Position numbers and translations under genes: made by a program. Under the pieces are notes generated by a model. That model worked only from the letters and a program-made list of their open reading frames with translations. It was not told the DNA's origin and did no database searches. Below, piece after piece: positions 15,383 to 51,395 of a DNA stretch of 64,000 nt. The stretch is from IMG/VR virus record IMGVR_UViG_3300042455_001086, positions 62,001 through 126,000 of that record. One strand, 5' to 3'. The stretch's first letter is position 1. Every line of letters begins with the position of its first letter.

Positions 15383-15817
15383 TTAATTAATAGTGTAAAG
15401 TTCATAATATACATACAAAGCTCCACTCCAGTTATCAACTTCAGCATCAGCTGGGTTTGCGTTATATAAATCAAATCTCACACCAGAGCTAATTCCAGTT
15501 GAAATTAAATAAGGAATTGCATTATCACTAGGATTTTGACTATAATATACAGAGTATTGAACATATATATTATCTCTATTTTCAACGGTAAGATCCAAAT
15601 CCGGGTTATTGATCACAAAATAGATTGAACTACCAAATCCTGGAGATGGTGCGAAATCTTCCATCCCAAGAATGTCAATAATACCTTTTGTTGTATTTAC
15701 TGTGACAACATCGGTTTGATCACGGTCTAATTCATAATGTGCGACACTATTGTCGTTTAATTCAGTTCCATTAAGAACAATTTCAGATGCGATTAATTTA
15801 TCTACTTTTAGTGGCAT
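15383..15817 (-). CDS. Putative structural/fibre-associated beta protein (MPLKVDKLIASEIVLNGTEL N-terminus)
   Basis: Beta-rich composition; N-terminus shared with 15843. Confidence 0.5.
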   Translation of the reverse strand: MPLKVDKLIASEIVLNGTELNDNSVAHYELDRDQTDVVTVNTTKGIIDILGMEDFAPSPGFGSSIYFVINNPDLDLTVENRDNIYVQYSVYYSQNPSDNAIPYLISTGISSGVRFDLYNANPADAEVDNWSGALYVYYELYTIN

Positions 15818-15845
15818 AATTTTTTGTTTTTTAATTGTTTATTTA
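15757..15845 (-). repeat. ~89-bp direct repeat, also at 16340-16428
   Basis: Identical 20-codon N-terminus plus upstream DNA, one mismatch. Confidence 0.9.
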
Positions 15846-16400
15846 GTTATATACTCTTATTTCTAATCTTATATTAATATGTTGATTACTTCCATTACTT
15901 GCATATAAACTAATTTCTGATGTACCATTATTAGCACAAACAAAACCCACAAAAATAGTTTCATCATCTGAACCAGAATAAGCTGTTGCCCATATTTTAT
16001 TTTGTGTAAATAATTCAACACTATTTGCTAAATACACTCCTTGTGCTATATAAGTAAACCAAATATTACCAATAGTATTCTCTAACACTGTTACTTCTGG
16101 GGCTCCTGTGTTATATAGTAAGGTACTACCACCATAACTTAATGGTGTGTCGTTATTTATTGCAACAAAATAAGTATCTGGATTATTATTTGGTGCGCCA
16201 ACATTTGAAAAGTCACCACCAGCAGCTTGAATTTTATAAGTTACTCCTTTTGTTAATGGTCCCGAATTAATTCCGGTTGTATTACCTTGACCACTCTGTG
16301 TCAATAAAGCTGTATATACTTTATAAGGTAATACTCCAGTTAATTCAGTTCCATTAAGAACAATTTCAGATGCGATTAATTTATCTACTTTTAGTGGCAT
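15843..16400 (-). CDS. Putative structural/fibre-associated protein
   Basis: YKVYTALLTQSG...APEVTVLENTIG; G/N/T-rich. Confidence 0.5.
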   Translation of the reverse strand: MPLKVDKLIASEIVLNGTELTGVLPYKVYTALLTQSGQGNTTGINSGPLTKGVTYKIQAAGGDFSNVGAPNNNPDTYFVAINNDTPLSYGGSTLLYNTGAPEVTVLENTIGNIWFTYIAQGVYLANSVELFTQNKIWATAYSGSDDETIFVGFVCANNGTSEISLYASNGSNQHINIRLEIRVYN

Positions 16401-16626
16401 AATTTTTTGTTTTTAAATTGTTTATTTAATAATAAATATTTACAATTGCCGGTTTATTCGTATAATTTTAAGATTTTTATTTTAACCCATTCAAAAAACG
16501 CGGCCAATCGGAACCAAAATAAAATCACGGACGAAGTCCGGGTTCGGTTTATACCCCCAATAAGAAAGGAAGAATTTTAATTATAATGATTTTTTATTTT
16601 AAAAATACTATAAACTAACAAAAAAA

Positions 16627-18146: not shown

Positions 18147-18185
18147 AGTAATAAATACCCGGAATTTCAGAAAAAATTTCAAAAA

Positions 18186-18229
18186 TTTTTTTTGAATATT
18201 GGGTCTAATTTAAATTGGGGGTCGTGTTT
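18186..18229 (+). repeat. 44-bp exact noncoding direct repeat, copy 1; copy 2 at 18886-18929
   Basis: T8-gaatattgggtctaatttaaattgggggtcgtgttt; copies 700 bp apart. Confidence 0.9.
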
Positions 18230-18799: not shown

Positions 18800-18885
18800 A
18801 ATATCCTATATTAATATTTTTTTTTATTTTAAAATAAATATTAATTAAAAAAAAAACGACTTTTTTTGAAAAAATTTTTTAAATT

Positions 18886-18929
18886 TTTTTTTTGAATATT
18901 GGGTCTAATTTAAATTGGGGGTCGTGTTT
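18886..18929 (+). repeat. 44-bp direct repeat, copy 2
   Basis: Matches 18186-18229. Confidence 0.9.
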
Positions 18930-19983: not shown

Positions 19984-20463
19984 TTAATTTACATCAAACC
20001 AATCATCATATACCTCACCATCTCTATGGTCTTCATCGGTTATTTCCCAATCCCAGGGAGCAATCTCATTGTGTTGTCTTAGTTCCTCAAGATAGCTTGA
20101 ATTAAAATCATCGTCAAGATATGTATCAACTTGACCTGATCTTGTGTATTGTATTCGAACCTTTTCATCCGTTACAAAATCACAGTCCTTATACTCAAGG
20201 GTTGGTCTATTAAGTTCCTTATCTTCCACATAATAAAATGGATTATTTTTTAATAGATAATAAAGATATTCAACATCCAATCTTTCAAACTCCCAACCAA
20301 TTGGTGCTTGAAGTATTTTTTTTGTATTTGAGTTGTCATACCTTGAAAATAAATTAAAGAAGTCTTCCGGCTCACCCAGTTCTTCATCTTTTAATACTTT
20401 GTGAACAAACCCCAAATACTTCTTTAGTTGAGGTTCGCTAAATTTTTCAAATCTTGTTCCCAT
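19984..20463 (-). CDS. Acidic hypothetical protein
   Basis: 159-aa ORF; TATTTAT 5 nt upstream. Confidence 0.7.
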   Translation of the reverse strand: MGTRFEKFSEPQLKKYLGFVHKVLKDEELGEPEDFFNLFSRYDNSNTKKILQAPIGWEFERLDVEYLYYLLKNNPFYYVEDKELNRPTLEYKDCDFVTDEKVRIQYTRSGQVDTYLDDDFNSSYLEELRQHNEIAPWDWEITDEDHRDGEVYDDWFDVN

Positions 20464-20483
20464 ATAAAATAAATATCAAATAG

Positions 20484-20515
20484 TTTGGTTATGTCAATTA
20501 TTATTTGTAACTTTG
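20484..20515 (+). promoter_or_regulatory. Bacteroidota-type housekeeping promoter (-33 TTTG, 20-nt spacer, -7 TAACTTTG)
   Basis: Exact match to TTTG-N20-TAnnTTTG; no ATG follows. Confidence 0.7.
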
Positions 20516-20519
20516 TATT

Positions 20520-20682
20520 GTTGGTGGTTGATTCCGAAACGGGTCCGAGTTCTCTAGGTGGGGGTTCGTAGAGGGTGAACTCCATAACATCTTATAAAAA
20601 TATAAGACAATAAAAAAATCCCCCAATACAAACCCGTCTTGTAAAGGAAGATAAACCCCCACCCACTCGTTTGTGGTTTTTT
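20520..20682 (+). ncRNA. Candidate structured small RNA
   Basis: GC-rich three-way junction downstream of a consensus promoter; weak hairpin + T6 at 20663-20682. Confidence 0.4.
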
Positions 20683-20821
20683 ATGTCATTATTTGTGTTT
20701 GATCTTATCTTAATCTTTACAAGCCACCAGGACTTTGATTAACTAATTCCCAGCTCTGGGGAAAATAAGTTCATTATATAAATATATGATTGTTTTGAAA
20801 AAGTCAAATATTTTTTATTAT

Positions 20822-21100
20822 TTACTTTTCCAGCTGAGCCCTTGAATGAGCTTGAATAAGATATGATATTGTCTGTAAATCCTGGGGACCAGTTATTTCC
20901 CCCATCTTATACAAACACTCAATCACATCTTCCATATCTGTATGAGTTAAAATATGTATTCGCTGTTTTAATTTATTCCCGTGAAGTGTGGCCTCTTTGT
21001 AAATACAGTGTCCGGAATATAAACCATGACAATATGTCACACTTATGGTGTCCCCTGATTTACTGACCTGGGGATTGAAAATGTCTAATATTGATTCCAT
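20822..21100 (-). CDS. Hypothetical protein
   Basis: 92-aa ORF. Confidence 0.5.
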   Translation of the reverse strand: MESILDIFNPQVSKSGDTISVTYCHGLYSGHCIYKEATLHGNKLKQRIHILTHTDMEDVIECLYKMGEITGPQDLQTISYLIQAHSRAQLEK

Positions 21101-21221
21101 ATGTTAATAATTTGTTTATAAATATTTGTTAATTTATTTGGAAATGTCAAAATGTCAGGTTCGTGTTGGGGACTACACAATCCCCCAGTTAGGGTTTCCC
21201 CACTTTTTCCCACTCCATAGT

Positions 21222-21519
21222 TCCCACTTATTACCACAATAATTGTCGTTCTAAATATCATAACCCCAATTTTTTCCCCTTCCTAGTATCTGGAAGACCA
21301 CTTTTTTTACTATATCTATTTCCCCGCTAAAATGGTATAGTTATAGTTTAAAGGCCGTGGATAGACATTTATGTTGTTTGTAAATCACTTTATTGGTTAC
21401 TTAAAAACATATCTTCAACGACCCGTAAGGGGGTATTTCAACAATGACCACCTTAAATTTACACAACTAATAACACATAGTAAATGGTAATAATCACTAA
21501 TAAGTGGTAATAAGTGGGA
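21222..21519. repeat. 16-bp perfect inverted repeat (21222-21237 / 21504-21519)
   Basis: tcccacttattaccac / gtggtaataagtggga. Confidence 0.85.
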
Positions 21520-21874
21520 TTATGTTTTATATCAGTTAAGCAAGGTTAAACCTTGCAATCAAGATATAATTAGTAATCCCTTTCACTACCACATTCATTT
21601 TAGTCTGTAATCACCACACCAAAATATAATATACATACAACACTAAAATATAACTTTGGTACAAAGTTGTCTGGATAGTTGTACCATATCATTATACCAA
21701 ATGTGTTATTATATTTTGTGTACCATATTGGTCACTAATACTGGGGGGGACCCATTAAAATGGGGGAAAAAGATTAGAACATATGAGTGAATGAAAAAGG
21801 AGACCGGATGAGGTCTCCCTTTGTAATGAGTGAGTATGTTGTAATGTTTTTACCTATTTAATAATCTTTAGCTC

Positions 21875-21913
21875 TTACCTTAATATTCTTCTTATGGATT
21901 CTTGTAGGTTCAT
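21875..21913 (-). pseudogene. Empty leader cassette: MNLQESIRRILR*
   Basis: Leader DNA identical to neighbours, but GAA codon replaced by TAA. Confidence 0.7.
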
Positions 21914-21915
21914 AA

Positions 21916-22371
21916 TTAATCTCTATATATTCCCAATACTGGGATTTTAGTTAATCCTTTTCTAGTATAGGAGTGGAATCTGTGCCAACCATCTATAATT
22001 AGTTCTTCATCATCAAAATCAATTATGATTGGTAATACTGAATCTCCGTGGTCTGTTTGTTCATCTCCATACCATTTATGATAATTCTCAAAACTATCCC
22101 ATTCTAATCGTTCTGTAACCTCATCTTTTATTAACTTAATTGGGACAACTCCATAGTAAAACATTTTTCTTTTAAAAGAAGTTTGTAACTCGTCATCAAT
22201 TAAATCTTTAATCTCCATATCATTTGTAGTTCCTTCATTTCTAAATATCATTAATGATTTTTGATATGGATATGGTAATTTATAAAATGGTGATACATCT
22301 AAATAATGACTAATATCTTTTGATTCCAGTTCTTCCCTTAATATTCTTCTTATGGATTCTTGTAGGTTCAT
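21916..22371 (-). CDS. MNLQE leader + ParB/Srx-like domain
   Basis: LPIIID....IIDGWHRF. Confidence 0.7.
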   Translation of the reverse strand: MNLQESIRRILREELESKDISHYLDVSPFYKLPYPYQKSLMIFRNEGTTNDMEIKDLIDDELQTSFKRKMFYYGVVPIKLIKDEVTERLEWDSFENYHKWYGDEQTDHGDSVLPIIIDFDDEELIIDGWHRFHSYTRKGLTKIPVLGIYRD

Positions 22372-22691
22372 AATCTTTCTTTGTAGTGGTTGTATAATGA
22401 TTTAATTTTGTCATCAAACAAATCTGATACATCTGTTACAAAATCTATTTCTTCTTGTTGTGGTAGATCTTCCCAGCCCAATTCATACTCATTATACATA
22501 ATTGTTTCCACAGCTCTTAAAGTTAATTCATATTTGAATTGTCCGTAATTTTCCGTTTCATAATACACTTGTTCGGCATTACCTGGAAGTTTTCTTTTAA
22601 TATCGTCTAATTTAATTCTCCTGCGAAAGAATTTCGTTTCATTTAGTAATTCTTCCCTTAATATTCTTCTTATGTTTTCTTGTAGATTCAT
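22368..22691 (-). CDS. MNLQE leader + RR-family domain
   Basis: MNLQENIRRILREE; FFRRRI. Confidence 0.75.
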   Translation of the reverse strand: MNLQENIRRILREELLNETKFFRRRIKLDDIKRKLPGNAEQVYYETENYGQFKYELTLRAVETIMYNEYELGWEDLPQQEEIDFVTDVSDLFDDKIKSLYNHYKERL

Positions 22692-22694
22692 TTA

Positions 22695-22764
22695 TAATAA
22701 ATATATTGTAATCTTTTTATCTAATCTATAATCTTTAGTAATTCTCTTACTTCTGGGTGTGATA
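22695..22764 (-). repeat. 70-bp exact direct repeat, also at 23408-23477
   Basis: 3' end of gene 23434 plus TATTTAT element, duplicated. Confidence 0.9.
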
Positions 22765-22789
22765 TAATAATTTTCCATATGTTGGAATT

Positions 22790-23404
22790 TTAATCTAACA
22801 TTTGTGGTTTGTCAATTTCATCCATAGGTATTGTTGCCAAATATTCGTCTTCGAATCCTCTGGAAAGTTTTATCCCAATATTGTTATATGTTGGTTCATA
22901 ATTAGATTCTTCGTCTCTTAATTTTTGATTTAATTGATGTCTTAAAGTATCGGAACTTTTTTCACCAACAATCCCATCAATCTGATAGTTTGTTCTTAAT
23001 TTTGAATTAAACTCATCTATAATTTCCTGAATCTTTCTTTTAATTTTTGAGATTTCACTCTTCGTTACCGGCTCATCATTATATAATCTTATTATGTTAC
23101 CACCAATTCCATTAAAAATACCCCTTTCTTTTATGAACCTAGATAATGCCCCATTTAAGTTAATTTCACTAATTGGTGTAAATCTGTATTTAACCCCCAA
23201 TTCTTTTAGTCTACCGAAGTTTTCATACTCAATGTATGCGTATAGTGGTATAGTAATATATCGTAAGTCTGGTGATGAAAAATGACCATATTGTTTTATA
23301 ATTTTGGCGGCTTCAGATTTTCTAACATTAAGATTTTTATGGAAGTCCTCACCATTGGATAATTCTTCCCTTAATATTCTTCTTATGGATTCTTGTAGGT
23401 TCAT
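22790..23404 (-). CDS. MNLQE leader + unknown cargo
   Basis: MNLQESIRRILREE. Confidence 0.75.
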   Translation of the reverse strand: MNLQESIRRILREELSNGEDFHKNLNVRKSEAAKIIKQYGHFSSPDLRYITIPLYAYIEYENFGRLKELGVKYRFTPISEINLNGALSRFIKERGIFNGIGGNIIRLYNDEPVTKSEISKIKRKIQEIIDEFNSKLRTNYQIDGIVGEKSSDTLRHQLNQKLRDEESNYEPTYNNIGIKLSRGFEDEYLATIPMDEIDKPQMLD

Positions 23405-23433
23405 ATGTAATAAATATATTGTAATCTTTTTAT

Positions 23434-23943
23434 CTAATCTATAATCTTTAGTAATTCTCTTACTTCTGGGTGTGATAAGAATTTTTCTATATCATTTTTA
23501 ATTGTTCCGGTATTACAAAATTGATTGTTAAAGAAATGTTTTGGTATTTTATCATATTCATCGTGCCAAATATCTATTCTATAATCTTCTGGTAATTCAT
23601 TTAATTGTCTATCATACCAATCCTGGGCTCTTTCTTCTATTTCATCTTCTGTTGTGAATCCATTGGAGTCTAAATATAAATCGTCTATCTTTATGTAAGC
23701 GTGAATAAGATACGATTGTTCTACTTCTCCCTCGTCAAAATCATAAACCTCATCGGCCATTATTAAATAATATCTAATGTTTTTATTTGGGTATAGTTTT
23801 TTTAATCTACCAATAATATTATAAGCAAAATAATGACAATAACCGTGTTGGTAATCATATTTATTTCCGTGTTTATTTCCGGTGTTCCATTTTGATTCCA
23901 GTTCTTCCCTTAATATTCTTCTTATGGATTCTTGTAGGTTCAT
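23434..23943 (-). CDS. MNLQE leader + putative papain/transglutaminase-like domain
   Basis: GYCHYFA...IHAY...YLDSNG (C-H-D); start moved to 23943. Confidence 0.55.
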   Translation of the reverse strand: MNLQESIRRILREELESKWNTGNKHGNKYDYQHGYCHYFAYNIIGRLKKLYPNKNIRYYLIMADEVYDFDEGEVEQSYLIHAYIKIDDLYLDSNGFTTEDEIEERAQDWYDRQLNELPEDYRIDIWHDEYDKIPKHFFNNQFCNTGTIKNDIEKFLSHPEVRELLKIID

Positions 23944-23979
23944 ATGTAATAAATACCTTATATATACAAAAAACCCCAC
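23902..23979 (-). repeat. 78-bp terminator+promoter+leader unit, also at 26087-26164
   Basis: Three mismatches by manual alignment. Confidence 0.9.
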
Positions 23980-24002
23980 CTTTTGGGGTGGGAATTATCT
24001 GT

Positions 24003-24422
24003 TTAAATCGGTATAATCTCACATGGTTCTAATCTTATTTTCTTAACTTCACGATAGTTTGTGAGTGATTTTAATATATTAACCAAACTATCTGAAAGTT
24101 CTTTAAGGAATTTTTGATCTACAATATCATCTAATGTAATATAATCTATCTTATTTGTAAGTTCATAACCTCTATATTCTAACCATCTTTGTTTAACCCA
24201 GGTTTCATCTACATATATTTTACCATAGAATGAGATAATATCACTAATTTCAGAATATAAAACATCATATATTTCAATTTTTTTCCACCAGTCATATTTT
24301 TTAGTCATAGTTTTATTTAAAACCATTTCCATAGCCGAATAAGATAAACCGCTTTCTTCTTCCCTATTTATTTTGGCATACCACTCAGTTAATACTTTTC
24401 TTATGTTTTCTTGTAGGTTCAT
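24003..24422 (-). CDS. MNLQE leader + unknown cargo
   Basis: MNLQENIRKVLTE; start moved to 24422. Confidence 0.75.
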   Translation of the reverse strand: MNLQENIRKVLTEWYAKINREEESGLSYSAMEMVLNKTMTKKYDWWKKIEIYDVLYSEISDIISFYGKIYVDETWVKQRWLEYRGYELTNKIDYITLDDIVDQKFLKELSDSLVNILKSLTNYREVKKIRLEPCEIIPI

Positions 24423-24444
24423 ATTATTATAAATATGACCATAA

Positions 24445-24768
24445 TTAAATTCGGATATATCCAATTTTTGTTTTATATAATCTATATGTGTCTTTCATTT
24501 TGTCTTTATATCTATTTCTTATAAAATCACATAATTTTGAATGGATTATCTCCATTTCATCTATTTTATTAAAAAAAACATCCCAACTAGGCATTTTTAA
24601 ATGTTCTACCATAAAATAATTTGACATATCGTGTAATAATGCTTCTTTCCAACTACGATAATCATGTGATCTAACTAAATGTTGAGCACCATTAGAATTT
24701 AACCAGAAGTGGAAAACCTCATCAATAGTCTCAAGTCTTCTAATTATGAGTTTTTGGTATTTGTCCAT
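24445..24768 (-). CDS. RR-family protein lacking the N-terminal leader peptide
   Basis: LIIRRL; TACATTTG promoter 3 nt before ATG. Confidence 0.65.
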   Translation of the reverse strand: MDKYQKLIIRRLETIDEVFHFWLNSNGAQHLVRSHDYRSWKEALLHDMSNYFMVEHLKMPSWDVFFNKIDEMEIIHSKLCDFIRNRYKDKMKDTYRLYKTKIGYIRI

Positions 24769-24796
24769 AGACAAATGTAGTAATTAATTTTGAAAC

Positions 24797-25188
24797 CTAC
24801 CACTGTCTGTCTTTATCTGACATTGTATTGATAATATTATCTACTATTACATTAACTTTTGGGATAAATTTACGTAGATGCCATTGTAGTTCATAAACTA
24901 ATGGGTCTTCATCCACAAACCAATTGGAACTATATTCTATCTTGAGATATATGTTTAGAACATTTTTTTTTCAATATTTGTGATTCTAATTTTTGGTTCT
25001 AACTCAAGAAAATCGCAAACATCAAATGAAATGTGTTCATCATCTTCCGAATTCAGTTCTCTACAAGTTTTTAACATTAACTCTAATGTATCATCCAAAA
25101 GTTTCTGGAGTCTTTCTATTCTTCGACCGTGACCAGTTTTATTGATCTCTTCTTTTAATATTCTTTTTATGTTTTCTTGTAGGTTCAT
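24797..25188 (-). pseudogene. MNLQE-leader gene split at an A9 tract (needs +1 nt or -1 frameshift)
   Basis: Frame 0 stops at 24955; -1 frame continues NVLNIYLKIEY...DRQW* to 24797. Confidence 0.65.
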
Positions 25189-25189
25189 A

Positions 25190-26128
25190 TTAATCTCCAC
25201 ATTGTATATGATAATGTTCTCTTAACTTATCACCAAATTTATTTTTGACATATCTTTCTATAAATCTATACATTTGTCCCCATTCGTCTGAATCATCATC
25301 TAATTTGTCGGCAAAATAATCCCAATACATTCCATCTCCTGTCTTTTCGATTACAATCTCCACAAAGTTTTCAGGGGTCCTAACATTACATATACCATTA
25401 TATTGTCTTTCTATTTCTCTTACAGAAAAATCAACCAACCAATCAACCGTGTCTATTCTTCTTTTAATTAAATTAACCGGATTTGATATTTCTTCCTTTA
25501 ATATCCTTCTTATTGATTCTTGTAGGTTCATTAAGTCACCTATATCCATATTTTTTATATCATCCGGTAATTCATTAAACTCTTTATCCTGTTTAGCTTT
25601 TAACTCCTCAGCTTCTTTCTCTTTTTTTATTCGTTCTTTTTCTTCAGGTGTCAAATCAATTTTTGGTTGTTTTCCCGTTTTTAGATAAATCTCTTTAGCT
25701 TTGTCCGCTTCTTCGTTTGATCCAATTAATTTAATTGCTGAAGGTGGTATTGGTTCAGTTGTTACATAAAAATACCATTCTGGCTCTGTTTTCTCGTGAA
25801 TAGGATCTTTATACCAATTATTATCAAGTTTTGTTAAATCTATTTCCCAAATGTCATTCCCATAAACACCAAAAAAGTTACCATGTTTTGGGTCTTGTGC
25901 AAATATTAAAGGAACCGGTTCCAGATTTAATTCATTGTTTGTAATAAAATTCTTTGTTCTTTCCCCAATTTTTGGTAATAAACCTCTTTTTAGAATACTA
26001 TCTCGATTCTTAGATGATGAATAATGATGTAATATAGATGGTGGATCTATTTTTGTTAAAATACTTTTAAGGGAAATTTTTTCTATTTCTTCCCTTAATA
26101 TTCTTCTTATGGATTCTTGTAGGTTCAT
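25190..26128 (-). CDS. Fusion of two cassettes: leader + Tpt1/ART-like domain, then second leader + RR-family domain
   Basis: LHHYSSSKNRDSILKRGLLP...TEPIPPSAIKL; internal MNLQESIRRILKEE at 25531. Confidence 0.65.
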   Translation of the reverse strand: MNLQESIRRILREEIEKISLKSILTKIDPPSILHHYSSSKNRDSILKRGLLPKIGERTKNFITNNELNLEPVPLIFAQDPKHGNFFGVYGNDIWEIDLTKLDNNWYKDPIHEKTEPEWYFYVTTEPIPPSAIKLIGSNEEADKAKEIYLKTGKQPKIDLTPEEKERIKKEKEAEELKAKQDKEFNELPDDIKNMDIGDLMNLQESIRRILKEEISNPVNLIKRRIDTVDWLVDFSVREIERQYNGICNVRTPENFVEIVIEKTGDGMYWDYFADKLDDDSDEWGQMYRFIERYVKNKFGDKLREHYHIQCGD

Positions 26129-26185
26129 ATGTTATAAATAGTTTATATATACAAAAAACCCCACTTTTATGTGAGGTTAATAATT

Positions 26186-26473
26186 CTAAACCATATTATT
26201 GAAAAATTTCTCAAGTTCGTATCTATATTTACTTGATATGAATTTATATAGGTTATTAAAAATATTATGTGTTTCAGTTTCCCATAGGTTAAGTTCAAAA
26301 CTATATAAAATAACATTGTTTGTTGTTGTCACAACCACATGTCTTAACCAACGATCAAAATCAAGTTTCACAATTTTAATCAAATCTATCGTGATATTGT
26401 TATTTAAATGTTCATAAAAAATTTTATCAATGACTGCAACCCTTCTAATTAAGGCAAGTTCTAAATTATCCAT
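26186..26473 (-). CDS. RR-family protein lacking the N-terminal leader peptide
   Basis: ALIRRV; TATCTTTG 3 nt before ATG. Confidence 0.65.
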   Translation of the reverse strand: MDNLELALIRRVAVIDKIFYEHLNNNITIDLIKIVKLDFDRWLRHVVVTTTNNVILYSFELNLWETETHNIFNNLYKFISSKYRYELEKFFNNMV

Positions 26474-26533
26474 ATACAAAGATATAATTTAATTTTGGAT
26501 TGATCTATAATTGACTTCTGGTTCTGACCTATT

Positions 26534-26839
26534 TTAATTATTTTTTCCATTAATATTTTTCTTACCGAATATTAGTTTTAGAAAAAATCTTTCAATTTCA
26601 TATGGTTCTGAATATTTGTATATCTTATAACAAACATACACACCAAAACAAAGTCTTAGAACTGTTAGAATATTAAATGAAATAAAACCAATCGTTGTTA
26701 AAACAATATCTAAAACATCAATTAAAATAAAAATGGTAAATAAAATCTCGTGTTTAAGAATTTTACGATTCAACTCTTTGATTCTTTTTTGAGCCTCCTC
26801 TGATGTTAATTTTTCAAATTCATACAGATTCTCTAACAT
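26534..26839 (-). CDS. Membrane protein
   Basis: Two hydrophobic helices. Confidence 0.65.
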   Translation of the reverse strand: MLENLYEFEKLTSEEAQKRIKELNRKILKHEILFTIFILIDVLDIVLTTIGFISFNILTVLRLCFGVYVCYKIYKYSEPYEIERFFLKLIFGKKNINGKNN

Positions 26840-26972
26840 AGTTTTATTGTTTTCTATAGATCAATTTTATTAACTCACCATTACCATCAACAATGTCAAA
26901 AAACCATAATATTTTGATTTTTTTGTTATAATTAACTAATTGTAGAACTATTAAATGTGATAATCAACATTA

Positions 26973-27467
26973 CTACAACCCCTCATCTTCTTTTTCTGTG
27001 AAGTATTGATTAAACTTTTGCAACATTAAATAAAATTGAAATAACTTATCAATTCTATCAAACTTATTTGACAACCAAGCTTCACCATTTCTATATTCTT
27101 CATTTCTGTCGTCAAAAACAATTGTTCTACCAATACCATCACCAAACAAACGATATAAGGCAAATGCGTTATTTTCCAACCTTCTTTTTAATTCGTCGTT
27201 TCTAATTACTATATAACCCAAAACACCAAGTTTGATGTGATCAATAAACTCTTTATCACAATCTCTTTTTGTTGTACACCACTTTGTTCCAGAACCATAT
27301 TTTTTTGATGCTTCGTGTGTTAATGGAATTGTCAATATAAAATCATCGTCTTTGTATAGCTCAATATATTCATCTTTGGAGACTTTAAATCTCTCATGCA
27401 ATATCGATGAAGAGATGTGATCACTTAAAAGTCTATTATATTGTGATTCTGTAAGAATGATTCGCAT
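26973..27467 (-). CDS. Leader + PcfJ-like (ASxxYGxGTxWC) domain
   Basis: MRIILTESQY; PLTHEASKKYGSGTKWCTT. Confidence 0.5.
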   Translation of the reverse strand: MRIILTESQYNRLLSDHISSSILHERFKVSKDEYIELYKDDDFILTIPLTHEASKKYGSGTKWCTTKRDCDKEFIDHIKLGVLGYIVIRNDELKRRLENNAFALYRLFGDGIGRTIVFDDRNEEYRNGEAWLSNKFDRIDKLFQFYLMLQKFNQYFTEKEDEGL

Positions 27468-27488
27468 AACTATAAATATGCTTTTATA

Positions 27489-27875
27489 TTAAAAATTTGG
27501 AATTTGATTATCCCTTTCTTTATCCCTTAAATAAACTTCTAAGGTTGATGTTCCACCAGAATAAATTCTATCAAATGAACTCTTAAAAAAAGCTTCTAGT
27601 TGTGGTTTAAATTTTTTTCTAATCTCGAACATCTGGTCTGTTTGTTCGTCGTTAAAAGGTTTTTTCATAACTGTTGTAATAACTAAAACTCTTTCATCCG
27701 AATTTAAAAATTTTACATTTCTTATATCAACCATAAAATCATAAAAGTTTTCTGGAAACTCAATATCTTTGGTTAAAAAATTAATCATCTTTTTTACAGC
27801 ATACTTTAATCTTTCCGATTCAGTATTTTCAATTTCTTCTTTTAATATTCTTTTTATATTTTGCCTTATATTCAT
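27489..27875 (-). CDS. Leader-bearing hypothetical protein
   Basis: MNIRQNIKRILKEE; start moved to 27875. Confidence 0.75.
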   Translation of the reverse strand: MNIRQNIKRILKEEIENTESERLKYAVKKMINFLTKDIEFPENFYDFMVDIRNVKFLNSDERVLVITTVMKKPFNDEQTDQMFEIRKKFKPQLEAFFKSSFDRIYSGGTSTLEVYLRDKERDNQIPNF

Positions 27876-27876
27876 A

Positions 27877-28521
27877 TTAATATTCAATATCTGTTAGTTC
27901 AAACCATAAATCTTCTATTTGGTCTTCATACATATATTCCAATAAATTCATTACGGAGTCATACATATCTGATTCTTCCATAAACCCATCAATCAATAAA
28001 CCGTGTATTCCATCCATCATATAATTTAAAAATCGTGTTTTAAAATCCGAATAAGTAACTCCTGGGTGACTATGCCCTTCACTATAATATTTATAATTTT
28101 CATAAAATTCATCTTCTAAATCTTCTTTTGATACTCTCCTAAAAAGAAAATTTGCAGCATCTTTTTTATCGTATTTTGCTTCACTAATAATTGGTTCATA
28201 TCCTTCGCACTTTAGATTATCATAATATTCCTGAATTGTGTTTGAGAAAATTTCTTCAAGACCTTTGTTAATTATATTAATTTCTTCTTCTTCGGTTGAT
28301 TCATCATCATTTAAAAAGTCATAATTTGCCATTATATTAAAAATAACATCAGACATATCATCTAAAATAACACGATAAAACATATTATATCCTTCTTCCA
28401 CACCATACTTTGTTTTATAGAAACAACCATTTTGGTCCAAAAAAACATTTTGTAAAGCGTATTTTAAATCCGATACTGATATTCGTCTTAAAATATATTG
28501 TATTTCTTTTGTCATATCCAT
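27877..28521 (-). CDS. Protein with two tandem RR-family domains
   Basis: YILRRI and FLFRRV modules joined at IISE. Confidence 0.7.
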   Translation of the reverse strand: MDMTKEIQYILRRISVSDLKYALQNVFLDQNGCFYKTKYGVEEGYNMFYRVILDDMSDVIFNIMANYDFLNDDESTEEEEINIINKGLEEIFSNTIQEYYDNLKCEGYEPIISEAKYDKKDAANFLFRRVSKEDLEDEFYENYKYYSEGHSHPGVTYSDFKTRFLNYMMDGIHGLLIDGFMEESDMYDSVMNLLEYMYEDQIEDLWFELTDIEY

Positions 28522-28525: not shown

Positions 28526-29473
28526 TTAACTTGGTAATTTTTTACCTTTTAAATATGTTTTTTCGTTCTCAACTTTTATTTTAATTTTTGGTTCATATCC
28601 TTTTGGAAGTTTGTTTTCAATCCCTTTGAATTCCCCCATTTCATTATCCATCCTTACAGTAACTTCTTTCTTTTCTAAATTCATCATAATTTGTCCGACA
28701 GTTGTCATATTATACATATTTTTAGTTCTATATGGATTTAAAAATGGATCTTCGTCATATTTTTCTTTTAATCTATCAATAATCTCAATATCTGTTTTCA
28801 CATCTTCTAAATGTTTCTTGGCTAATTCCATTCGTGAGACAGATGATTTTCTTTTTTCACCCTTTGTATAACCAGCACCTTTTTGATAAATTCCGTGATT
28901 AGTCCTTACAACAAGTTTTGAGTCTTCTTTTAATTTTTTTATAACTGGTGCGTGTTTTCTTGTCATTTCAACAACATAGATATTTTTATTATCAGAAACT
29001 ATGGTTTCACCTTTTAATCCAACATCGTTTTTATCTTCACCGGTATAACTAATAATTGATTTTATGACTTTTGGTAGAGTTTTATAACTAAGAGCTTTTC
29101 TTATTTTTCCACCATCAGCAGCAAACTTTTTCTTTGATGTTTTATCTTTTATTTTATCAACTTGTCTTCTTTCTTTTTTAACACCCTTTCCTTCTTTTTC
29201 GTCTTCAACAACCAATAAACTTGAATTTACAATACCAATACCAAATTCATTCATTCCTTCACTCCAGTCTGTATCAATATCTCTCCAATATACAACCTCA
29301 ACATCATCAATTAATTCGTGTATAATTTCAACATTAGCTTTATATCCTCTGTCTCTATTCTTTGCTAAAACAATACCATCGTCAATTCTTACTCCGGCAA
29401 TCGTACATTCAACTAATGTTTTTAGTTCTATATGTTCTCTTAATATATTTTTGATTGAATCTTTTAAGTTCAT
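28526..29473 (-). CDS. Leader + Cys-nucleophile Ntn-hydrolase
   Basis: CTIAG...LAKNRDR...WSEGMNEFGIGIVNSSL, typical of C45/C59/C69-type Ntn hydrolases. Confidence 0.75.
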   Translation of the reverse strand: MNLKDSIKNILREHIELKTLVECTIAGVRIDDGIVLAKNRDRGYKANVEIIHELIDDVEVVYWRDIDTDWSEGMNEFGIGIVNSSLLVVEDEKEGKGVKKERRQVDKIKDKTSKKKFAADGGKIRKALSYKTLPKVIKSIISYTGEDKNDVGLKGETIVSDNKNIYVVEMTRKHAPVIKKLKEDSKLVVRTNHGIYQKGAGYTKGEKRKSSVSRMELAKKHLEDVKTDIEIIDRLKEKYDEDPFLNPYRTKNMYNMTTVGQIMMNLEKKEVTVRMDNEMGEFKGIENKLPKGYEPKIKIKVENEKTYLKGKKLPS

Positions 29474-29496: not shown

Positions 29497-30645
29497 TTAT
29501 TTACCAAAAAGTTCAGCTTCTCGTTTTCTTCTAACTTCAAGACCTGGAAATTTTCCAAACATATGTGAGCTTTCTTTTTTTAATTGTTCTTGAGCCTTTT
29601 CCATTTGACCTCTTTTTACATATTGAATAAATTCACTCATTCTAAAATTTTTAATCCCCATATTGTATATCATTGAAATCATTGCGTTATACATATTTTG
29701 TGTTATATTTGGTGTTATTCCTTTTTTTTCCCAATCATTTAATATTTTATTTAACTGGTCTTTTGATTCTTCAACATCATCTCTTAAAAGAATTTCAGCT
29801 TGGTTTTTTGTGATTGTTGTTTTACCTGGAATAATTCTATGATATTTAGGTAAGAAATTATAATTTCCACCAACATCACCTCTATTTGGATTACTAAACA
29901 CAGCGTGTCCATAACCAATTGTTTTTGCACCATCACCGATGTCATAAGCGGTTAATATTGGTTCGCCTTTATTAACGACTGAACCTTCTTCATATTTTAG
30001 ATGATCAATTAATTTATCGTCATAATTACGAATTCGTTTTTTTGTTTCTTTTAAACCACCACCAATATTGATTGGTAGTTCTGTTTTTTCTGGTTCAACT
30101 TGTTTTGGTTCTGGTAATGATTGATAACCAATAACACCTATTAAAGAATATAAAGCATATTTTAAAATCTTTTTTCTTACATTATCGTCAAGATTTTTTA
30201 TCTTTTCTTTAAGTAATTCCAAATATTTTTTAGCTTCTTCTTTTGTTTTTACCCACAAAGTTGAAAGATCTATATTTTTTTTGACATCAGTAAAATCCCA
30301 CTCAAAATCTGGTTCCCTATCTTCATTTATAAGATTTATCGACTGAATAGCCAAATTGATGTATTCTGAACTTAATTTTAAATTTTCATTTAAGTCTCTT
30401 GTGTATTTTCTAAATCTATATGGTGAGTTTTTGACTGCTGACTTTGGAAATCTGGTTCCAATACCTTGTCTTCTGGCCATTTTAAGTGTTCTTGTATATT
30501 CTTCAAGTTCTTTTTTCTTTTTCCCATCACAATGTGCTCGTTGTGAAAAACCTTTTGGGTTATCACAGTCGATTGAATCCTTATATTCTTTGGACCATTT
30601 CTCTTCTAATTCTTCTTTTAATATTTTTCTAATTAATTGTTTCAC
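29497..30645 (-). CDS. Leader + modules + GH24 phage lysozyme
   Basis: LKYEEG..AYD.GDG..TIGYGH..YNAMISMIYNMG..GLEVRRKREAELF; GTG start. Confidence 0.85.
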   Translation of the reverse strand: MKQLIRKILKEELEEKWSKEYKDSIDCDNPKGFSQRAHCDGKKKKELEEYTRTLKMARRQGIGTRFPKSAVKNSPYRFRKYTRDLNENLKLSSEYINLAIQSINLINEDREPDFEWDFTDVKKNIDLSTLWVKTKEEAKKYLELLKEKIKNLDDNVRKKILKYALYSLIGVIGYQSLPEPKQVEPEKTELPINIGGGLKETKKRIRNYDDKLIDHLKYEEGSVVNKGEPILTAYDIGDGAKTIGYGHAVFSNPNRGDVGGNYNFLPKYHRIIPGKTTITKNQAEILLRDDVEESKDQLNKILNDWEKKGITPNITQNMYNAMISMIYNMGIKNFRMSEFIQYVKRGQMEKAQEQLKKESSHMFGKFPGLEVRRKREAELFGK

Positions 30646-35048: not shown

Positions 35049-35722
35049 TCAAAATCTTCTTCTTTTAAAATTAGTGGCTCACCAATTTCTGTTACTTGTT
35101 CGACCCAGTTATGATATAAATATCCATTATTATCGGAGTCTAACTTCATTGTACCGAACCCACCAACACCTTCGTTCCAATCATCTGTTTCCAAAACTTC
35201 TGAAATCATAAAATAAATTTCCTGTTGGAAAGTTTTTATATTGTGTTCTTTATTATTGTAGGTAATTTTATAACTATCAAACTCATTTTGCATTCCATTA
35301 TAATCAATTATTAATTCATCAATTGACAAATCTTTCATAAATTCAAATAATGGTTGTGAATATCTAAGCTCTTCCCAACCAAACCTATGATTATCTTTTG
35401 TGTGTTTATACACATAATACTTTGGTGTTAAAAGAATTTCTCTTGTTTTCGGATTTATCGTAACATCAACCCAAAAAGAACCATCTTTTTTGTCGGTATT
35501 GTTATAAAGTTTTTGACCAAAATATGAGATTATTTTATGAATAAATTCATCAAATATATCAATGAGACTAAACCTAAATGTATGACGCGAAGTCCAAAAT
35601 GTTGGGTAATAGTCAATCTCATCACCAAACATATCAACATTCTTTCCAATAGAACCAATAGGATTTAAATAAGCCATTAACGCCTTGAATGTTCTTTTAT
35701 TTATAATTGTAGTATTACTCAC
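35045..35722 (-). CDS. DUF6878-like paralog 5 (degenerate)
   Basis: Same architecture as neighbours; WNEGVGGFG. Confidence 0.45.
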   Translation of the reverse strand: MSNTTIINKRTFKALMAYLNPIGSIGKNVDMFGDEIDYYPTFWTSRHTFRFSLIDIFDEFIHKIISYFGQKLYNNTDKKDGSFWVDVTINPKTREILLTPKYYVYKHTKDNHRFGWEELRYSQPLFEFMKDLSIDELIIDYNGMQNEFDSYKITYNNKEHNIKTFQQEIYFMISEVLETDDWNEGVGGFGTMKLDSDNNGYLYHNWVEQVTEIGEPLILKEEDFE

Positions 35723-36410
35723 TAAATGAATCTTGTGTTACTTTTATTTCTATTGGTCCCAAATCGCTTTCCTCTACATTCCAATAATGATCGTGATTAA
35801 TCCGATCTTTAGTAATAGTAAAACTACCTTGAGATCCTTCATTTATTTCCCAACCACCATATTCACTTAATAAATTATAACAAATATTTTCAATCTCATT
35901 TGGAACATCGCCGCTTTGACCATTTTTAGTTGTATACTCACTATTAATGAACCCGCTATCTCCACCGCCCTCATAACTAACAATCATATCATCTATATTA
36001 AGTTCGGTCAATATTTTATCTATTTCTAAAAATTTTTCATACATAGAATCACCTTCTTCATAGTCATCTTTATCGTGGTAGTTTCCACTTTCTTGAGTAT
36101 CATAATAGCGATATTCAAGGTCTTCAAAAATTATTGTTTCATTTACGACATCTATCAGACCGTAAATTCTATAATAACTAGACATACCGTCAACATCAAC
36201 ACTACTTAACCCTTCATCAACACACTTTTCAGCATAAATATTTATTATATCTTGAATTATGTCTTCAATAACTTCAGCGACACTCAATAATTCAGTGTGA
36301 ATAATAACACTACCAACATAACCATCTTCACCGACTTCAACTTCAAAAGCCACATCTTTTAATTTGGCACTTTTAAAATAAGTCATTATTAATTTAAATT
36401 TCTTTTTCAT
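35715..36410 (-). CDS. DUF6878-like paralog 4
   Basis: YEGGGDSG...GGWEINEGSQG; start moved to MKKKF. Confidence 0.6.
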   Translation of the reverse strand: MKKKFKLIMTYFKSAKLKDVAFEVEVGEDGYVGSVIIHTELLSVAEVIEDIIQDIINIYAEKCVDEGLSSVDVDGMSSYYRIYGLIDVVNETIIFEDLEYRYYDTQESGNYHDKDDYEEGDSMYEKFLEIDKILTELNIDDMIVSYEGGGDSGFINSEYTTKNGQSGDVPNEIENICYNLLSEYGGWEINEGSQGSFTITKDRINHDHYWNVEESDLGPIEIKVTQDSFSE

Positions 36411-36411
36411 C

Positions 36412-37110
36412 CTATTTAAAATCTTCAATATTATCCAAAGTAATTTCCAAATTCATTCCAGAATCTTCATATTCTTCTTTTTTTATATTACCCATCACTA
36501 TTATATCATCACCCCAAATTCTACAACTTAATTCGGCACCAGGACCATCATTCCAATATCTATCTCCTGTTATTGTCACCATCAAACCATATCCTATATC
36601 CCATAATCTTTGATCAAGTTCTTCTGTTATTTTTTTTCTACGATTATCAACTTCAAAATCAAACGAGTCACCCTCACCAAATCTTCCATTGATTCCAAAA
36701 TCAAAATATGCGGTATCTGGATACTCACTGTATAAATAATCAATTCCATATTGAACTTCTCTTTTCATACCGACATACTGAAATTCTCTTGAGAATGATT
36801 CACTTTTTTCTACTTTATGAGTTCCTTGAAAAACTAATCTATTTTCCTGTGGAAAAATATCAATATATAAAAACCAATAATCGTCATTATCTAACACAAT
36901 ATATTTTCTAAATTCATAATAAAAATGATCAATTAGTTCTTCCAATATTGTTTCAATAAATGACGGAATTTCAATATTTATATTTCCATCTATTAAAAAT
37001 TTACGGTCCCAATGTTCAATATAGTTTCGATCAAGTTCAACACGAGTTTGGACTATTTTACTTCTCAAGCCTCTTAAAAACCCAAATAATATTTTTAGTT
37101 TGTCTTTCAT
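36412..37110 (-). CDS. DUF6878-like paralog 3 (degenerate)
   Basis: MKDKLKILFGF; WNDGPGA. Confidence 0.45.
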   Translation of the reverse strand: MKDKLKILFGFLRGLRSKIVQTRVELDRNYIEHWDRKFLIDGNINIEIPSFIETILEELIDHFYYEFRKYIVLDNDDYWFLYIDIFPQENRLVFQGTHKVEKSESFSREFQYVGMKREVQYGIDYLYSEYPDTAYFDFGINGRFGEGDSFDFEVDNRRKKITEELDQRLWDIGYGLMVTITGDRYWNDGPGAELSCRIWGDDIIVMGNIKKEEYEDSGMNLEITLDNIEDFK

Positions 37111-37113
37111 TAT

Positions 37114-37827
37114 TTAAAAATCATCTAGTGTTATGATTATATTCATATCTGTCATATCATAATCTTCACTTCTAACATTGAAATCCAGTTGAATTGAGTT
37201 ATTTCTTTGAATTGTGATCTTTCCGGCAGCTCCTCTTTCATCTTTCCAAAAGCTATCAACTCTTTCTTTCATTATTTTATCCAAAAGTATTGCCCACGGT
37301 TCAAGTCTTAAAGTAACCGGTGTATCGTCTTCTTCAAAATCTTTAATATCTAAACCACGCCATTCCGCATCAAACTCATATGCTACTGTTTCTGTTTCTT
37401 TCCATAAATCACCATTTTCAAATGTCATATTTATTGCATCCAAAGTCTCTTGTGATAATTTATTTTCAGTTGGGAGACCAGGAGTTGTTAAATCAATATT
37501 ATATTTGTATGAATTTTCATATAAATATTTACATTCACTTTTAAATTTTATTTTATTTTTCCAAGGATAAATTGTAATATACAATGTCCAAAAATCATCT
37601 TCATCATAATTATTAAAACGATGAAATTTTCTCATCATACTTGATATAACTTCTTCCAAAATTTCTTCAATTATTTTTGGTGATTTAAAACCTTTACCTT
37701 TTTTGGTTGTAAAAATATGATCCCATTGTTCAAGACCATCATATATATAATTCATATATGTTGTAATCTCTTCTGTTTTAAGGCCTCTAAAAAACCCAAA
37801 TAATATTTTTAATTTTTCTTCCATCAA
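37114..37827 (-). CDS. DUF6878-like paralog 2 (degenerate)
   Basis: MEEKLKILFGF; WKDERGAAG. Confidence 0.45.
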   Translation of the reverse strand: MMEEKLKILFGFFRGLKTEEITTYMNYIYDGLEQWDHIFTTKKGKGFKSPKIIEEILEEVISSMMRKFHRFNNYDEDDFWTLYITIYPWKNKIKFKSECKYLYENSYKYNIDLTTPGLPTENKLSQETLDAINMTFENGDLWKETETVAYEFDAEWRGLDIKDFEEDDTPVTLRLEPWAILLDKIMKERVDSFWKDERGAAGKITIQRNNSIQLDFNVRSEDYDMTDMNIIITLDDF

Positions 37828-38498
37828 TCTTCAAACATATCAACAGTTAATTCAAATTTTTCATCACACCAATTCATTTCTCTCATAATCCATTCGTGTG
37901 AAATTACAATTTCCAAATTGTTATTTAATTCAATTGTTCCAGTGGAACCATCATCAATTTCCCAACCACCATAGGCATTTTCTAAATTATCGTAAAGTGT
38001 ATTCCAAATTAATTCATTGTCAGGTTCTCTGGATCCCCATTGGATATTTGTATCTTCACCATCAATTGTTATTGAGTTAATATCTCCATCATCCCCACCT
38101 CCACTATATCTTGCTTCAATTATTTCAACTCCAGTTCTTTTAAAATATTCTTCAAGTTTTGGATTTTCTAATTTTCTTTCATAAGTTTCAGCTTGATTTA
38201 TATATTCTTCATATTTTAACTCAATATACATTGAGTTTGTTTTTGGTTCCACAAATAAATAAACACTGTAATAGTCTGTCTCACTATAACAATTATCAAA
38301 TAATTCACTATTTATTTCGTTATAATAATATTCTACAACATCAGTAGCAAAATCAAATATCATTTCTGGTAATCCTGAAATATTTGAGCTAGCCCCCCAT
38401 TCATATTCAATATTCTCATTAGGAGCATTCCAAACAAACTGAACTGTTTTATTAAGTGGTTTTAAAAATTTTAAAAGTGCTAAAAATTTCTTTTTCAT
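37824..38498 (-). CDS. DUF6878-like paralog 1
   Basis: YSGGGDDG...GGWEIDDGSTG. Confidence 0.6.
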   Translation of the reverse strand: MKKKFLALLKFLKPLNKTVQFVWNAPNENIEYEWGASSNISGLPEMIFDFATDVVEYYYNEINSELFDNCYSETDYYSVYLFVEPKTNSMYIELKYEEYINQAETYERKLENPKLEEYFKRTGVEIIEARYSGGGDDGDINSITIDGEDTNIQWGSREPDNELIWNTLYDNLENAYGGWEIDDGSTGTIELNNNLEIVISHEWIMREMNWCDEKFELTVDMFED

Positions 38499-47802: not shown

Positions 47803-48028
47803 TTTCTTTTTTAAAATATTCGTTTATCTGTTCTTCGTGTGGTTTATTTAATTCGTCCAAACAATCAGCAATTAACCTTAAACTATATGGCGACCAATAT
47901 CCTTTTTCTTTATTGGCCTGGTAGTAAAAATACCCATTAATATCTTTAATTGCGTGTCCAATATTTTTGTTCCCATAAAATAATTCAAATAACCCTGGTG
48001 TGAGTTCTTCGGTTGTTATTCTATTCAT
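47795..48028 (-). CDS. Hypothetical protein
   Basis: 77-aa ORF. Confidence 0.6.
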   Translation of the reverse strand: MNRITTEELTPGLFELFYGNKNIGHAIKDINGYFYYQANKEKGYWSPYSLRLIADCLDELNKPHEEQINEYFKKENE

Positions 48029-48524: not shown

Positions 48525-48536
48525 ATTTATTTTATT

Positions 48537-48764
48537 TTATTTATATATTGATGATCTTGAATTAAGTCTCTGACTCAATAAAGTTTCCTTGAAGCACTTA
48601 ACAAATTCCTCTTTTATATCTTCAACAACTATTCCATCACCCCACACCATTACGTCTTTCTTAACCCTATCTTTCCAATGATAGTTTGTTGGGTAGTTGT
48701 ATAAAAGGAAGTTCTCCATTTCCTCCATAGTAAAGGAAAGTTCTATTTTAATTTGTTCACTCAT
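48537..48764 (-). CDS. Hypothetical protein
   Basis: 75-aa ORF. Confidence 0.55.
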   Translation of the reverse strand: MSEQIKIELSFTMEEMENFLLYNYPTNYHWKDRVKKDVMVWGDGIVVEDIKEEFVKCFKETLLSQRLNSRSSIYK

Positions 48765-49203: not shown

Positions 49204-49206
49204 TTC

Positions 49207-49678: not shown

Positions 49679-49680
49679 CT

Positions 49681-50204: not shown

Positions 50205-50219
50205 CTTTGTTTTGTTTTA

Positions 50220-50722: not shown

Positions 50723-50745
50723 AATACAAATATAAAAAAAATTGA

Positions 50746-51377: not shown

Positions 51378-51395
51378 AATACAAATATAATAAAA

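Follow-up and report, generated by a model that had tools for sequence, protein, structure and literature searches.

The small genes considered here lie in a stretch of 64,000 nucleotides (nt) of the IMG/VR virus record IMGVR_UViG_3300042455_001086 (positions 62,001 to 126,000 of that record), referred to below as the window. The viral contig to which it belongs comes from lake water, measures 257,166 bp and is also available in GenBank (JBFDJO010003269.1) and JGI (3300042455 Ga0453178_0000004). The window has a G+C content of 28-31% and nearly all of its genes are carried by the minus strand. Between positions 21872 and 27875, consecutive small minus-strand genes begin with a common leader which occupies their first 42 nt, or 14 codons, and encodes the peptide MNLQESIRRILREE. 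Leaders are designated below by the position of their ATG. The original prediction, made from the sequence, had described this region as an array of terminator, promoter and leader units in front of variable cargo domains, the repeats serving as recombination handles. It missed that the leader is primarily a peptide, and one which is kept in frame inside fused multi-module proteins.

Exact copies of the 42-nt leader are found at 22371, 23404, 23943 and 26128 and near-exact copies at 21913 (two mismatches), 22691 and 25531 (three mismatches each), where chance expectation, estimated from 100 shuffles, is none. The predicted repeats are real and the near-identity ascribed to them holds for these seven, but the copies at 25188 (36/42), 24422 (about 32/42) and 27875 (30/42 to the master leader) are more diverged than had been implied. 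Two longer identities noted at the outset were also confirmed: 22318-22372 equals 23890-23944 at 55 of 55 positions, and 23902-23979 matches 26087-26164 at 75 of 78. A further repeat of 125 nt relates 22640-22764 to 23353-23477 (117/125 identical).

Read in the direction of transcription, with all features on the minus strand, the array starts with a cassette of 128 amino acids (aa) with the diverged leader MNIRQNIKRILKEE (27489-27875). It is followed by a gene of a second leader type (MRIILTESQY; 26973-27467) with the motif TATTTAT 4 nt upstream, and by a leaderless gene of 95 aa (26186-26473), which belongs to a conserved frame and shows 77% nt identity to positions 7959-8217 of L140 (L-numbers designate the related viral contigs or loci fetched for comparison). 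A terminator hairpin and TATTTAT (26129-26178) then precede the leader at 26128, which opens an in-frame fusion of two cassettes (25190-26128; 312 aa). This open reading frame (ORF) comprises a leader, a module with a likely ADP-ribosyltransferase (ART) fold at about 25655-26083, an internal in-frame leader at 25490-25531 and an RRR-type module; its residues 1-217 or 200-312 are matched separately by relatives. Next come a 77-aa cassette (24955-25188) whose leader, MNLQENIKRILKEE, abuts the preceding stop codon, a second leaderless member of the conserved frame (24445-24768; 107 aa, with an IIRRLE motif) and a 139-aa cassette with the diverged leader MNLQENIRKVLTEW and TATTTAT 6 nt upstream (24003-24422). 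A second terminator hairpin, with TATATATAA and TATTTAT (23944-23993), precedes the leader at 23943. The 169-aa cassette which starts there (23434-23943) has an exact leader and a cargo for which YunG is a lead, and the 204-aa cassette downstream (22790-23404) an exact leader and a cargo without family match. The cargo of the latter is flanked by the two copies of the 125-nt junction, of which the second (22640-22764) consists of a non-coding remnant of the 3′ end of gene 23434-23943, the intergenic TATTTAT and the leader. The last two cassettes are of 107 aa (22368-22691; leader and a helical FFRRRI domain) and 151 aa (21916-22371; exact leader and a cargo for which ParB_N is a lead), the ATG of the latter overlapping the prior stop (ATGA). 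At the 3′ end of the array stands an orphan leader of 12 codons, MNLQESIRRILR, with its stop (21872-21913). The orphan leader, the duplicated 125-nt junction and the in-frame fusion are scars of rearrangement.

The terminator, promoter and leader had been proposed as a general unit. Hairpin, TATTTAT and leader occur together in only two of the ten copies, those at 26128 and 23943, for which 36 of the 40 nt upstream match; these are also the only two hairpins among the ten leader units, both terminator-like. TATTTAT is present without a hairpin at 24422, 23404 and 22691. At 25188, 27875, 22371 and 21913 the unit directly adjoins or overlaps the stop codon before it, and the copy at 25531 falls inside an ORF. 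In the window as a whole, 15 genes have TATTTAT 4-6 nt in front of their ATG; 12 of them bear a leader motif of either type. TATTTAT could be a phage promoter which co-regulates the leader-bearing genes. That the repeats would preserve expression timing and targeting, as had been proposed, is a conjecture. Sigma-70-like sites are not in excess (60 observed vs 69.7 in shuffles).

Codon use in the leader differs strongly from the genome background: AAC (94% vs 21%), CTA (80% vs 10%), TCC (89% vs 6%), ATA (98-100% vs 33%) and AGG (85% vs 8%). Variability is no higher at third codon positions than at first and second positions. The comparison of synonymous sites which had been suggested alongside the prediction gives a higher same-codon identity in leaders (0.79-0.85) than in cargo (0.58, for diverged homolog pairs in which the cargo synonymous sites are saturated). 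Rare codons are also retained in internal, non-start copies which were found by their peptide alone. Most leader variants are single purine transitions and leader RNA is unstructured, with fold z-scores of about 0. With its codons and third positions near-fixed, the leader DNA is thus more conserved than the peptide requires.

Such conservation might be expected of an expression element. The leader would then be a standardised translation-initiation region, or the 5′ end of leaderless or nearly leaderless mRNAs made from TATTTAT promoters in a host which does not use Shine-Dalgarno pairing. Under this view the peptide would be incidental, and the cassettes would be moved by ordinary illegitimate recombination with selection as a filter. 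The position of TATTTAT before 15 ATGs, 12 of them with leader motifs, is in keeping with this, as are the lack of RNA structure, the conservation of rare C-containing codons and the predominance of single purine transitions. We nevertheless consider a role in expression only to be unlikely, because conservation is at least as high in leaders which lack the promoter motif as in leaders which have it (master-codon use of 0.92 vs 0.88) and because internal copies lacking an ATG, which are unable to initiate translation, retain the rare codons as well as the core of the peptide. In addition, a second leader family (see below) has different DNA and the same peptide pattern, and the leader appears as a discrete helix on a flexible linker in a structure model.

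Comparison with relatives shows how the cassettes are arranged elsewhere. Leader arrays are located upstream of the same 92-aa gene (20822-21100, minus strand; here called the anchor gene) in 12 distinct contigs, and their cassette sets differ. The frame genes 26186-26473 and 24445-24768 are direct neighbours in L140; the window has two cassettes between them, including the fusion. The order of the 107-aa and 204-aa cassettes in L140 and L170 is the reverse of that in the window, the homolog of the 204-aa cassette in L140 being a stand-alone gene (83% nt identity). The anchor gene of L170 is 95% identical to that of the window, and the content and order of its array differ. Relatives thus share the flanking frame and differ in the content and order of the cassettes within it.

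The edges of homology coincide with the leaders. In eight contigs, homology to the 107-aa cassette sets in 0 to 15 nt ahead of its ATG, and at the other end it breaks off 0 to 2 nt away from the final base of the following leader. The 151-aa cassette and L114 are 93% identical over 22374 to 21873, a segment which opens 3 nt ahead of the ATG and closes on the final base of the orphan leader, at which position L114 carries the leader of a further cassette with other cargo. Overall, in more than ten comparisons with other contigs, nucleotide homology begins or ends within about 2 nt of a leader edge, which supports the proposal that leaders act as module boundaries and as recombination junctions. 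Identity extending beyond the leader falls on different sides in different leader pairs, the mosaic expected of crossovers within the leader.

Breakpoints precise to about 2 nt, together with the nucleotide invariance which extends to third positions, raise the question of whether a dedicated enzyme, either a nuclease of the homing HNH or GIY-YIG type or a recombinase which escaped recognition, targets leader DNA in a true site-specific system. Several HNH, GIY-YIG and endonuclease VII genes are indeed present within the window according to a family census. However, no nuclease or recombinase gene lies in or adjoins the array and none visibly co-occurs with it in the relatives, crossovers inside identical DNA are unresolvable and general homologous recombination on 42 bp of identity would suffice. 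We therefore judge a dedicated enzyme to be quite improbable, and exchange is presumably homologous rather than site-specific. The "integrase-free" part of the earlier description stands, since no integrase or recombinase family was found in 82 window ORFs, nor among the genes called in the 10 kb beyond the window on either side; its "integron-like" part is no more than an analogy, with neither intI nor attC present and the repeat being coding.

The leader is widespread among related viruses. A scan allowing all synonymous codons located 32 stretches encoding the leader peptide, spread over 30 IMG/VR contigs of which many are 100-300 kb in length, and a nucleotide scan of the 1.74 Mb of fetched loci returned 147 distinct leaders, vs 0 for a scrambled control. 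It is present on at least 106 distinct proteins, which form about 70 cargo clusters. In an alignment of 103 leader proteins, I7, L11 and E13 are invariant and the mean column identity of the cargo is 5%. The leader pattern gave no match in 185,579 bacterial and archaeal species genomes (one each) or in cultured-phage records, and a literature search for the leader motif strings returned nothing. The identical strain, with zero differences, is found in several lake-water metagenomes, and in those runs leader-containing bins are 10-20 times deeper than cargo bins.

Searches with the window cargo in Pfam, PHROGs and PDB sequences matched almost nothing, and only 6 of the 103 leader proteins have a Pfam match (DUF2237, ART-PolyVal and AAT). 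The N-terminal module of the 312-aa ORF was modelled by AlphaFold2 with a pLDDT of 84, and Foldseek matched the model to KptA/Tpt1 (probability 1.00, E from 2e-4) and then to DarT, which supports an ART-superfamily fold and backs the label given earlier to this cargo. The 107-aa cassette has 341 homologs, all unnamed; its model (pLDDT 90) predicts an all-helical cargo domain after a disordered linker and gave no fold match in the PDB. The "RR family" named earlier among the cargo is real, as a helical family with an FFRRRI motif and no known fold. The ParB-like label of the 151-aa cargo survives as a lead: its Atlas score against ParB_N clusters is 0.96, with 185-187 features in common, and Pfam gave no match. 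The papain-like label proved unsupported, the lead for the 169-aa cargo being YunG instead. The cargo domains (helical domains, an ART fold, ParB- and YunG-like leads and ORFans) are mutually unrelated, and those of effector type include the ART fold, ART-PolyVal and lysozyme.

This diversity bears on the simplest view of the locus, an ordinary family of tandem paralogs of which only the N-termini are still alike. The genes are indeed tandem and co-oriented, and several cargoes share an FFRRRI-type motif. Against common descent stand the approximately 70 unrelated cargo clusters and the difference between an all-helical domain and an alpha/beta ART fold; moreover, leader DNA is 100% identical where the cargo has no detectable similarity, and one cargo type is found with different leaders. 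A tandem-paralog origin is hardly credible and was rejected on the fold and clustering evidence.

At the protein level, the leader behaves as a module of its own. The AlphaFold2 model of the 107-aa cassette shows it as a separate helix (residues 3-15) on a low-confidence, disordered linker, that is as a predicted detachable N-terminal amphipathic helix outside the cargo fold. Internal in-frame leader copies number 21-22; their Met is mostly replaced, and the core ESIR(R/K)(I/V)L(R/K)EE is retained even in copies with 9-10 nt changes. Relatives encode polypeptides of two or three leader-delimited modules, and cassettes which are single genes in the window recur within these. In L170 the homolog of the 204-aa cassette forms the last of the three modules of a 480-aa ORF which has two internal leaders; that of the 169-aa cargo in L138 (85% aa identity) is the middle module of a 507-aa ORF, behind a decayed leader. 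A single 630-aa ORF of L133 includes both the cargo domain of the 139-aa cassette (residues 507-610) and the domain of gene 26973-27467 (residues 156-292), and the cargo of the 77-aa cassette recurs in relatives within ORFs of 229 and 278 aa.

A gene upstream of the array indicates what may happen to the leader. The product of 28526-29473 (minus strand) combines a leader-like N-terminus, MNLKDSIKNILREH, with an N-terminal nucleophile (Ntn) hydrolase of the AAT/peptidase C45 type (PF03417, E 4.7e-5). Three homologs of this hydrolase have three different leaders, each ending in x-E directly before the invariant CTIA...NRD. Ntn hydrolases of this class need a free N-terminal Cys. Since the nucleophile Cys directly follows the leader and a free N-terminus is needed, the leader must be removed there. 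The leader itself contains LQE and LRE, which are (L/I)-x-E motifs. Taken together, the fusion and fission of modules, the position in front of the Ntn nucleophile, the (L/I)-x-E motifs and the effector-like cargo make it probable that the leader peptide serves in targeting or processing as a tag which is later removed, by analogy with the capsid-targeting sequence (CTS) of phage T4.

The tag could also have a fate unrelated to the capsid, as a degron by which early proteins are removed on schedule, as a helix which docks onto a common partner or chaperone, or as a signal for import or export. An amphipathic helix on a flexible linker, as modelled, would suit such roles; the leader is present on many unrelated proteins including two peptidoglycan hydrolases, and no capsid genes within reach link it to head assembly. 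On the other hand, it has no hydrophobic signal-peptide character, its retention between fused modules and its position before the Ntn Cys fit a cleaved propeptide better than a degron, and the closest precedents, the T4 CTS and giant-phage propeptides, are head-targeting signals (PMC5694885). A fate outside the capsid seems rather unlikely.

The reading towards which we lean, if only slightly, is that of a hypervariable array of small accessory, effector-type genes in an uncultured freshwater phage, probably with a host among the Bacteroidota, in which each module is a 14-residue leader with an unrelated cargo and in which the modules are shuffled by homologous recombination. The approximately 42 bp of near-identical DNA at each gene start would provide portable homology for general homologous recombination, which could exchange, insert, delete and fuse cassettes, whether the partners are two phages in the same cell or two copies within a genome, and which would also homogenise the leaders. 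The leader peptide would be a common sorting or processing tag, absent from the mature protein. Its most likely role would be that of a virion-packaging propeptide, cleaved after Glu (LQE or LRE) as is the T4 CTS, and the cargo would be delivered alongside the DNA as host-takeover or anti-defence proteins.

Several observations weigh against this. Searches of the window, of the 10 kb on either side of it and of 81 long ORFs from related loci revealed no head genes and no prohead protease. About 29 of the 127 window ORFs bear the MNLQES-type leader or a related one, which is many for packaged proteins, but giant phages package dozens of proteins. In some fused ORFs of relatives, the joint has no recognisable leader. 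As to shuffling, contigs from four independent samples with identical copies of two array-linked proteins have exactly the array of the window. Rearrangement is therefore not frequent within the strain, and shuffling is evolutionary and not demonstrably ongoing. Logan k-mer contigs, the read-derived data in which excision circles and new junctions were sought, break at every leader; the sides of the joints are at most 40 nt, inside the repeat, and the joints are indistinguishable from the leaders of other phages. Finally, selection on random recombinants could also yield breakpoints at gene borders.

A bolder version, which we put forward tentatively and consider rather unlikely as a whole, would make the leader a dual-purpose element of a clade of abundant uncultured freshwater jumbo phages, at once a cleavable tag and a translated recombination site. 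As a tag, the peptide would load any cargo into the virion or another common pathway, modules functioning either fused or separate; as DNA, it would form the basis of an integrase-free cassette system, possibly aided by a leader-specific nuclease. Such a system would be a phage counterpart of the integron, with a recombination site which is itself translated and also works as a signal for protein sorting.

The MNLQES leader is not the only shared N-terminus. A second leader motif, MK(K)II(I/L)TE(S/E)(Q/D), starts about 16 further window ORFs, including a GH19/PG-binding protein. Its members, on unrelated ORFs, begin with MKIIITESQ, MKKIIKLTESDLTRIV or MKKxIITEEEKSRILGMHK, and their minus-strand ATGs include 12739, 14282, 15303, 17293, 17623, 18799, 27467, 33479, 33697, 34194, 55085 and 55466. 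This family and the MNLQES leader share (L/I)-(T/Q)-E-(S/E) and a basic amphipathic helix; its DNA is less uniform (73-86%) than that of the MNLQES leader. A third leader variant, MNLQE.I.RIKEMMG, occurs in relatives.

Other repeats were also noted in the window. A 95-nt repeat (97%) at 15757-15851 and 16340-16434 covers the upstream region and about the first 16 codons (MPLKVDKLIASEIVLNGTEL) of two adjacent paralogous genes, another case of a shared 5′ end. A 65-nt intergenic direct repeat (89%) is located at 18165-18229 and 18865-18929 and ends in GGGTCTAATTTAAATTGGGGGTCGTG. Positions 35715-38498 carry four tandem paralogs of approximately 224-237 aa (MKxKLKILFGFLRGL...) with no family match.

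Further upstream of the array, 29497-30645 (minus strand) encodes a lysozyme-domain protein (PF00959, E 3e-19) with a leader-like N-terminus, MKQLIRKILKEELEE. At about residues 15-55 (window 30480-30600), this protein includes a Cys-rich mini-module of about 45 residues (WSK.YK.SI.C.NPKGFSQRAHC), which is also found at the C-termini of many cargo proteins in L002, L010, L018, L025 and L126, for example DUF2237 proteins. Its presence on unrelated cargoes shows shuffling below the level of the gene.

On its downstream side, the array is closed by a terminator-like hairpin (21790-21822, minus strand; stem at 21799-21818, then TTTTT) which is conserved in L132 and L118. The region between array and anchor gene (21101-21870, minus strand; 770 nt) is free of ORFs, and an ORF-free spacer of 650-800 nt between array terminator and anchor gene is conserved in 11-12 contigs. 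Its final approximately 270 nt include invariant blocks such as GGGGATTGTGT and GACTGACATTTTGACA, and it contains a small hairpin showing compensatory changes. The spacer gave no Rfam match and no strong consensus fold, and Rfam-type RNA families were not matched in 20300-28000 overall. A recoded gene was excluded, as all three stop codons occur in all frames; the spacer may be a regulatory region or an undescribed RNA. A metagenome scan with the anchor gene returned mostly short contigs.

A second hypervariable spot is suggested by the gene tables. In L153 (24.7 kb), a near-identical strain, the distance from an HNH gene to thymidylate synthase appears to be about 1.4 kb and to be filled with different small genes. 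The same stretch of the window (about 47800-55480) measures about 7.7 kb, includes two MKKIIKLTESDL genes and looks like such a spot.

Family searches of the window and of 10 kb on either side revealed only accessory and nucleotide-metabolism genes. Neither the array nor one protein with a second-type leader had a DNA or protein match among 50,697 cultured-phage records; one neighbouring gene has weak matches only, to huge phages and to phages of Flavobacterium and Tenacibaculum. A type IX secretion C-terminal sorting domain (Por_Secre_tail) on a phage ORF of a related contig, together with Bacteroidota-style lipoprotein signals on window ORFs, gives a hint that the host belongs to the Bacteroidota.

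In several respects the array resembles the internal protein (IP) loci of T-even phages. The T4 CTS is a propeptide of 10-20 residues carried by otherwise unrelated internal proteins and cut by gp21, and some of its cargo, such as IPI and the packaged ART Alt, is tied to conflict with the host (PMC3012670, PMC5694885). Here, too, a short conserved N-terminal peptide, of 14 residues, heads unrelated small proteins at a locus which varies between phages, conflict-type cargo is represented by the candidate ART-fold module and by hydrolases, and the leader contains (L/I)-x-E motifs of the prohead-protease type (PMC3012670, PMC5694885). Unlike the CTS, the leader has far more copies per genome and cargo families, also occurs internally between fused modules and is nearly invariant in its DNA across many distinct phage contigs. 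No IP or head families were detected by Pfam or PHROGs in the window or in the fetched loci. To our knowledge, the leader sequence has no similarity to the T4 CTS.

The original prediction had also likened the array to promoter-repeat modules of T4-like hypervariable regions. These modules, PeSLs, are intergenic elements which combine a sigma-70-type promoter with a stem-loop and end at a Shine-Dalgarno sequence and ATG; they flank ORFans in the hyperplastic regions of T4-type phages and permit homologous exchange (insertions, deletions and replacements) without an integrase (PMC2839356, PMC4122927). Recombination between PeSL copies gives mini-circles. The likeness holds for location and breakpoints: conserved short sequences beside ORFans mark the limits of indels and replacements between related phages, and two units have a terminator hairpin and promoter-like motif directly upstream of the gene. 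It does not hold for the defining intergenic sigma-70 promoter and stem-loop, as the conserved core is part of the genes themselves, hairpins are absent from most units and there is no -35/-10 promoter.

Two other systems are partly comparable. Polyvalent proteins are predicted to be delivered with DNA and to release their modules by proteolysis (PMC5512222). They resemble the array in that disparate conflict-type domains share one polypeptide (two in window ORF 25190-26128, three in relatives), and an ART-PolyVal domain occurs on one leader protein. The likeness is partial: most modules here are separate genes, fusions are small and the module borders carry a conserved 14-residue joint, and no embedded peptidase (MPTase/assemblin-like) or portal/MuF linkage was found in a Pfam census of the 103 leader proteins and their neighbours. 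With integron arrays the locus shares tandem, co-oriented and mostly promoterless cassettes of unrelated function with a repeated element between them. Unlike in integrons, this repeat is a translated direct repeat without significant fold, and neither attC nor attI is present.

What is notable in this kin of T-even IP loci and PeSL-type shuffling is its scale, the translated recombination handle and the invariance of rare codons. If the interpretation is correct, a 14-residue tag marks a vast set of small phage proteins, almost none of them characterised, which would be likely host-takeover or anti-defence effectors of abundant lake phages, and one coding stretch is at the same time a protein signal and a portable piece of homology through which genes are exchanged. 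The ideas developed for the T4 CTS and for PeSLs would then apply to another, uncultured group of phages and on a far larger scale. Modules which can be fused or split provide a natural bridge from single-gene cassettes to polyvalent proteins. So short a natural tag for packaging or processing would have practical applications too and, should the leader indeed be dual-purpose, it could be used to fish out hundreds of families of injected effectors without known function.

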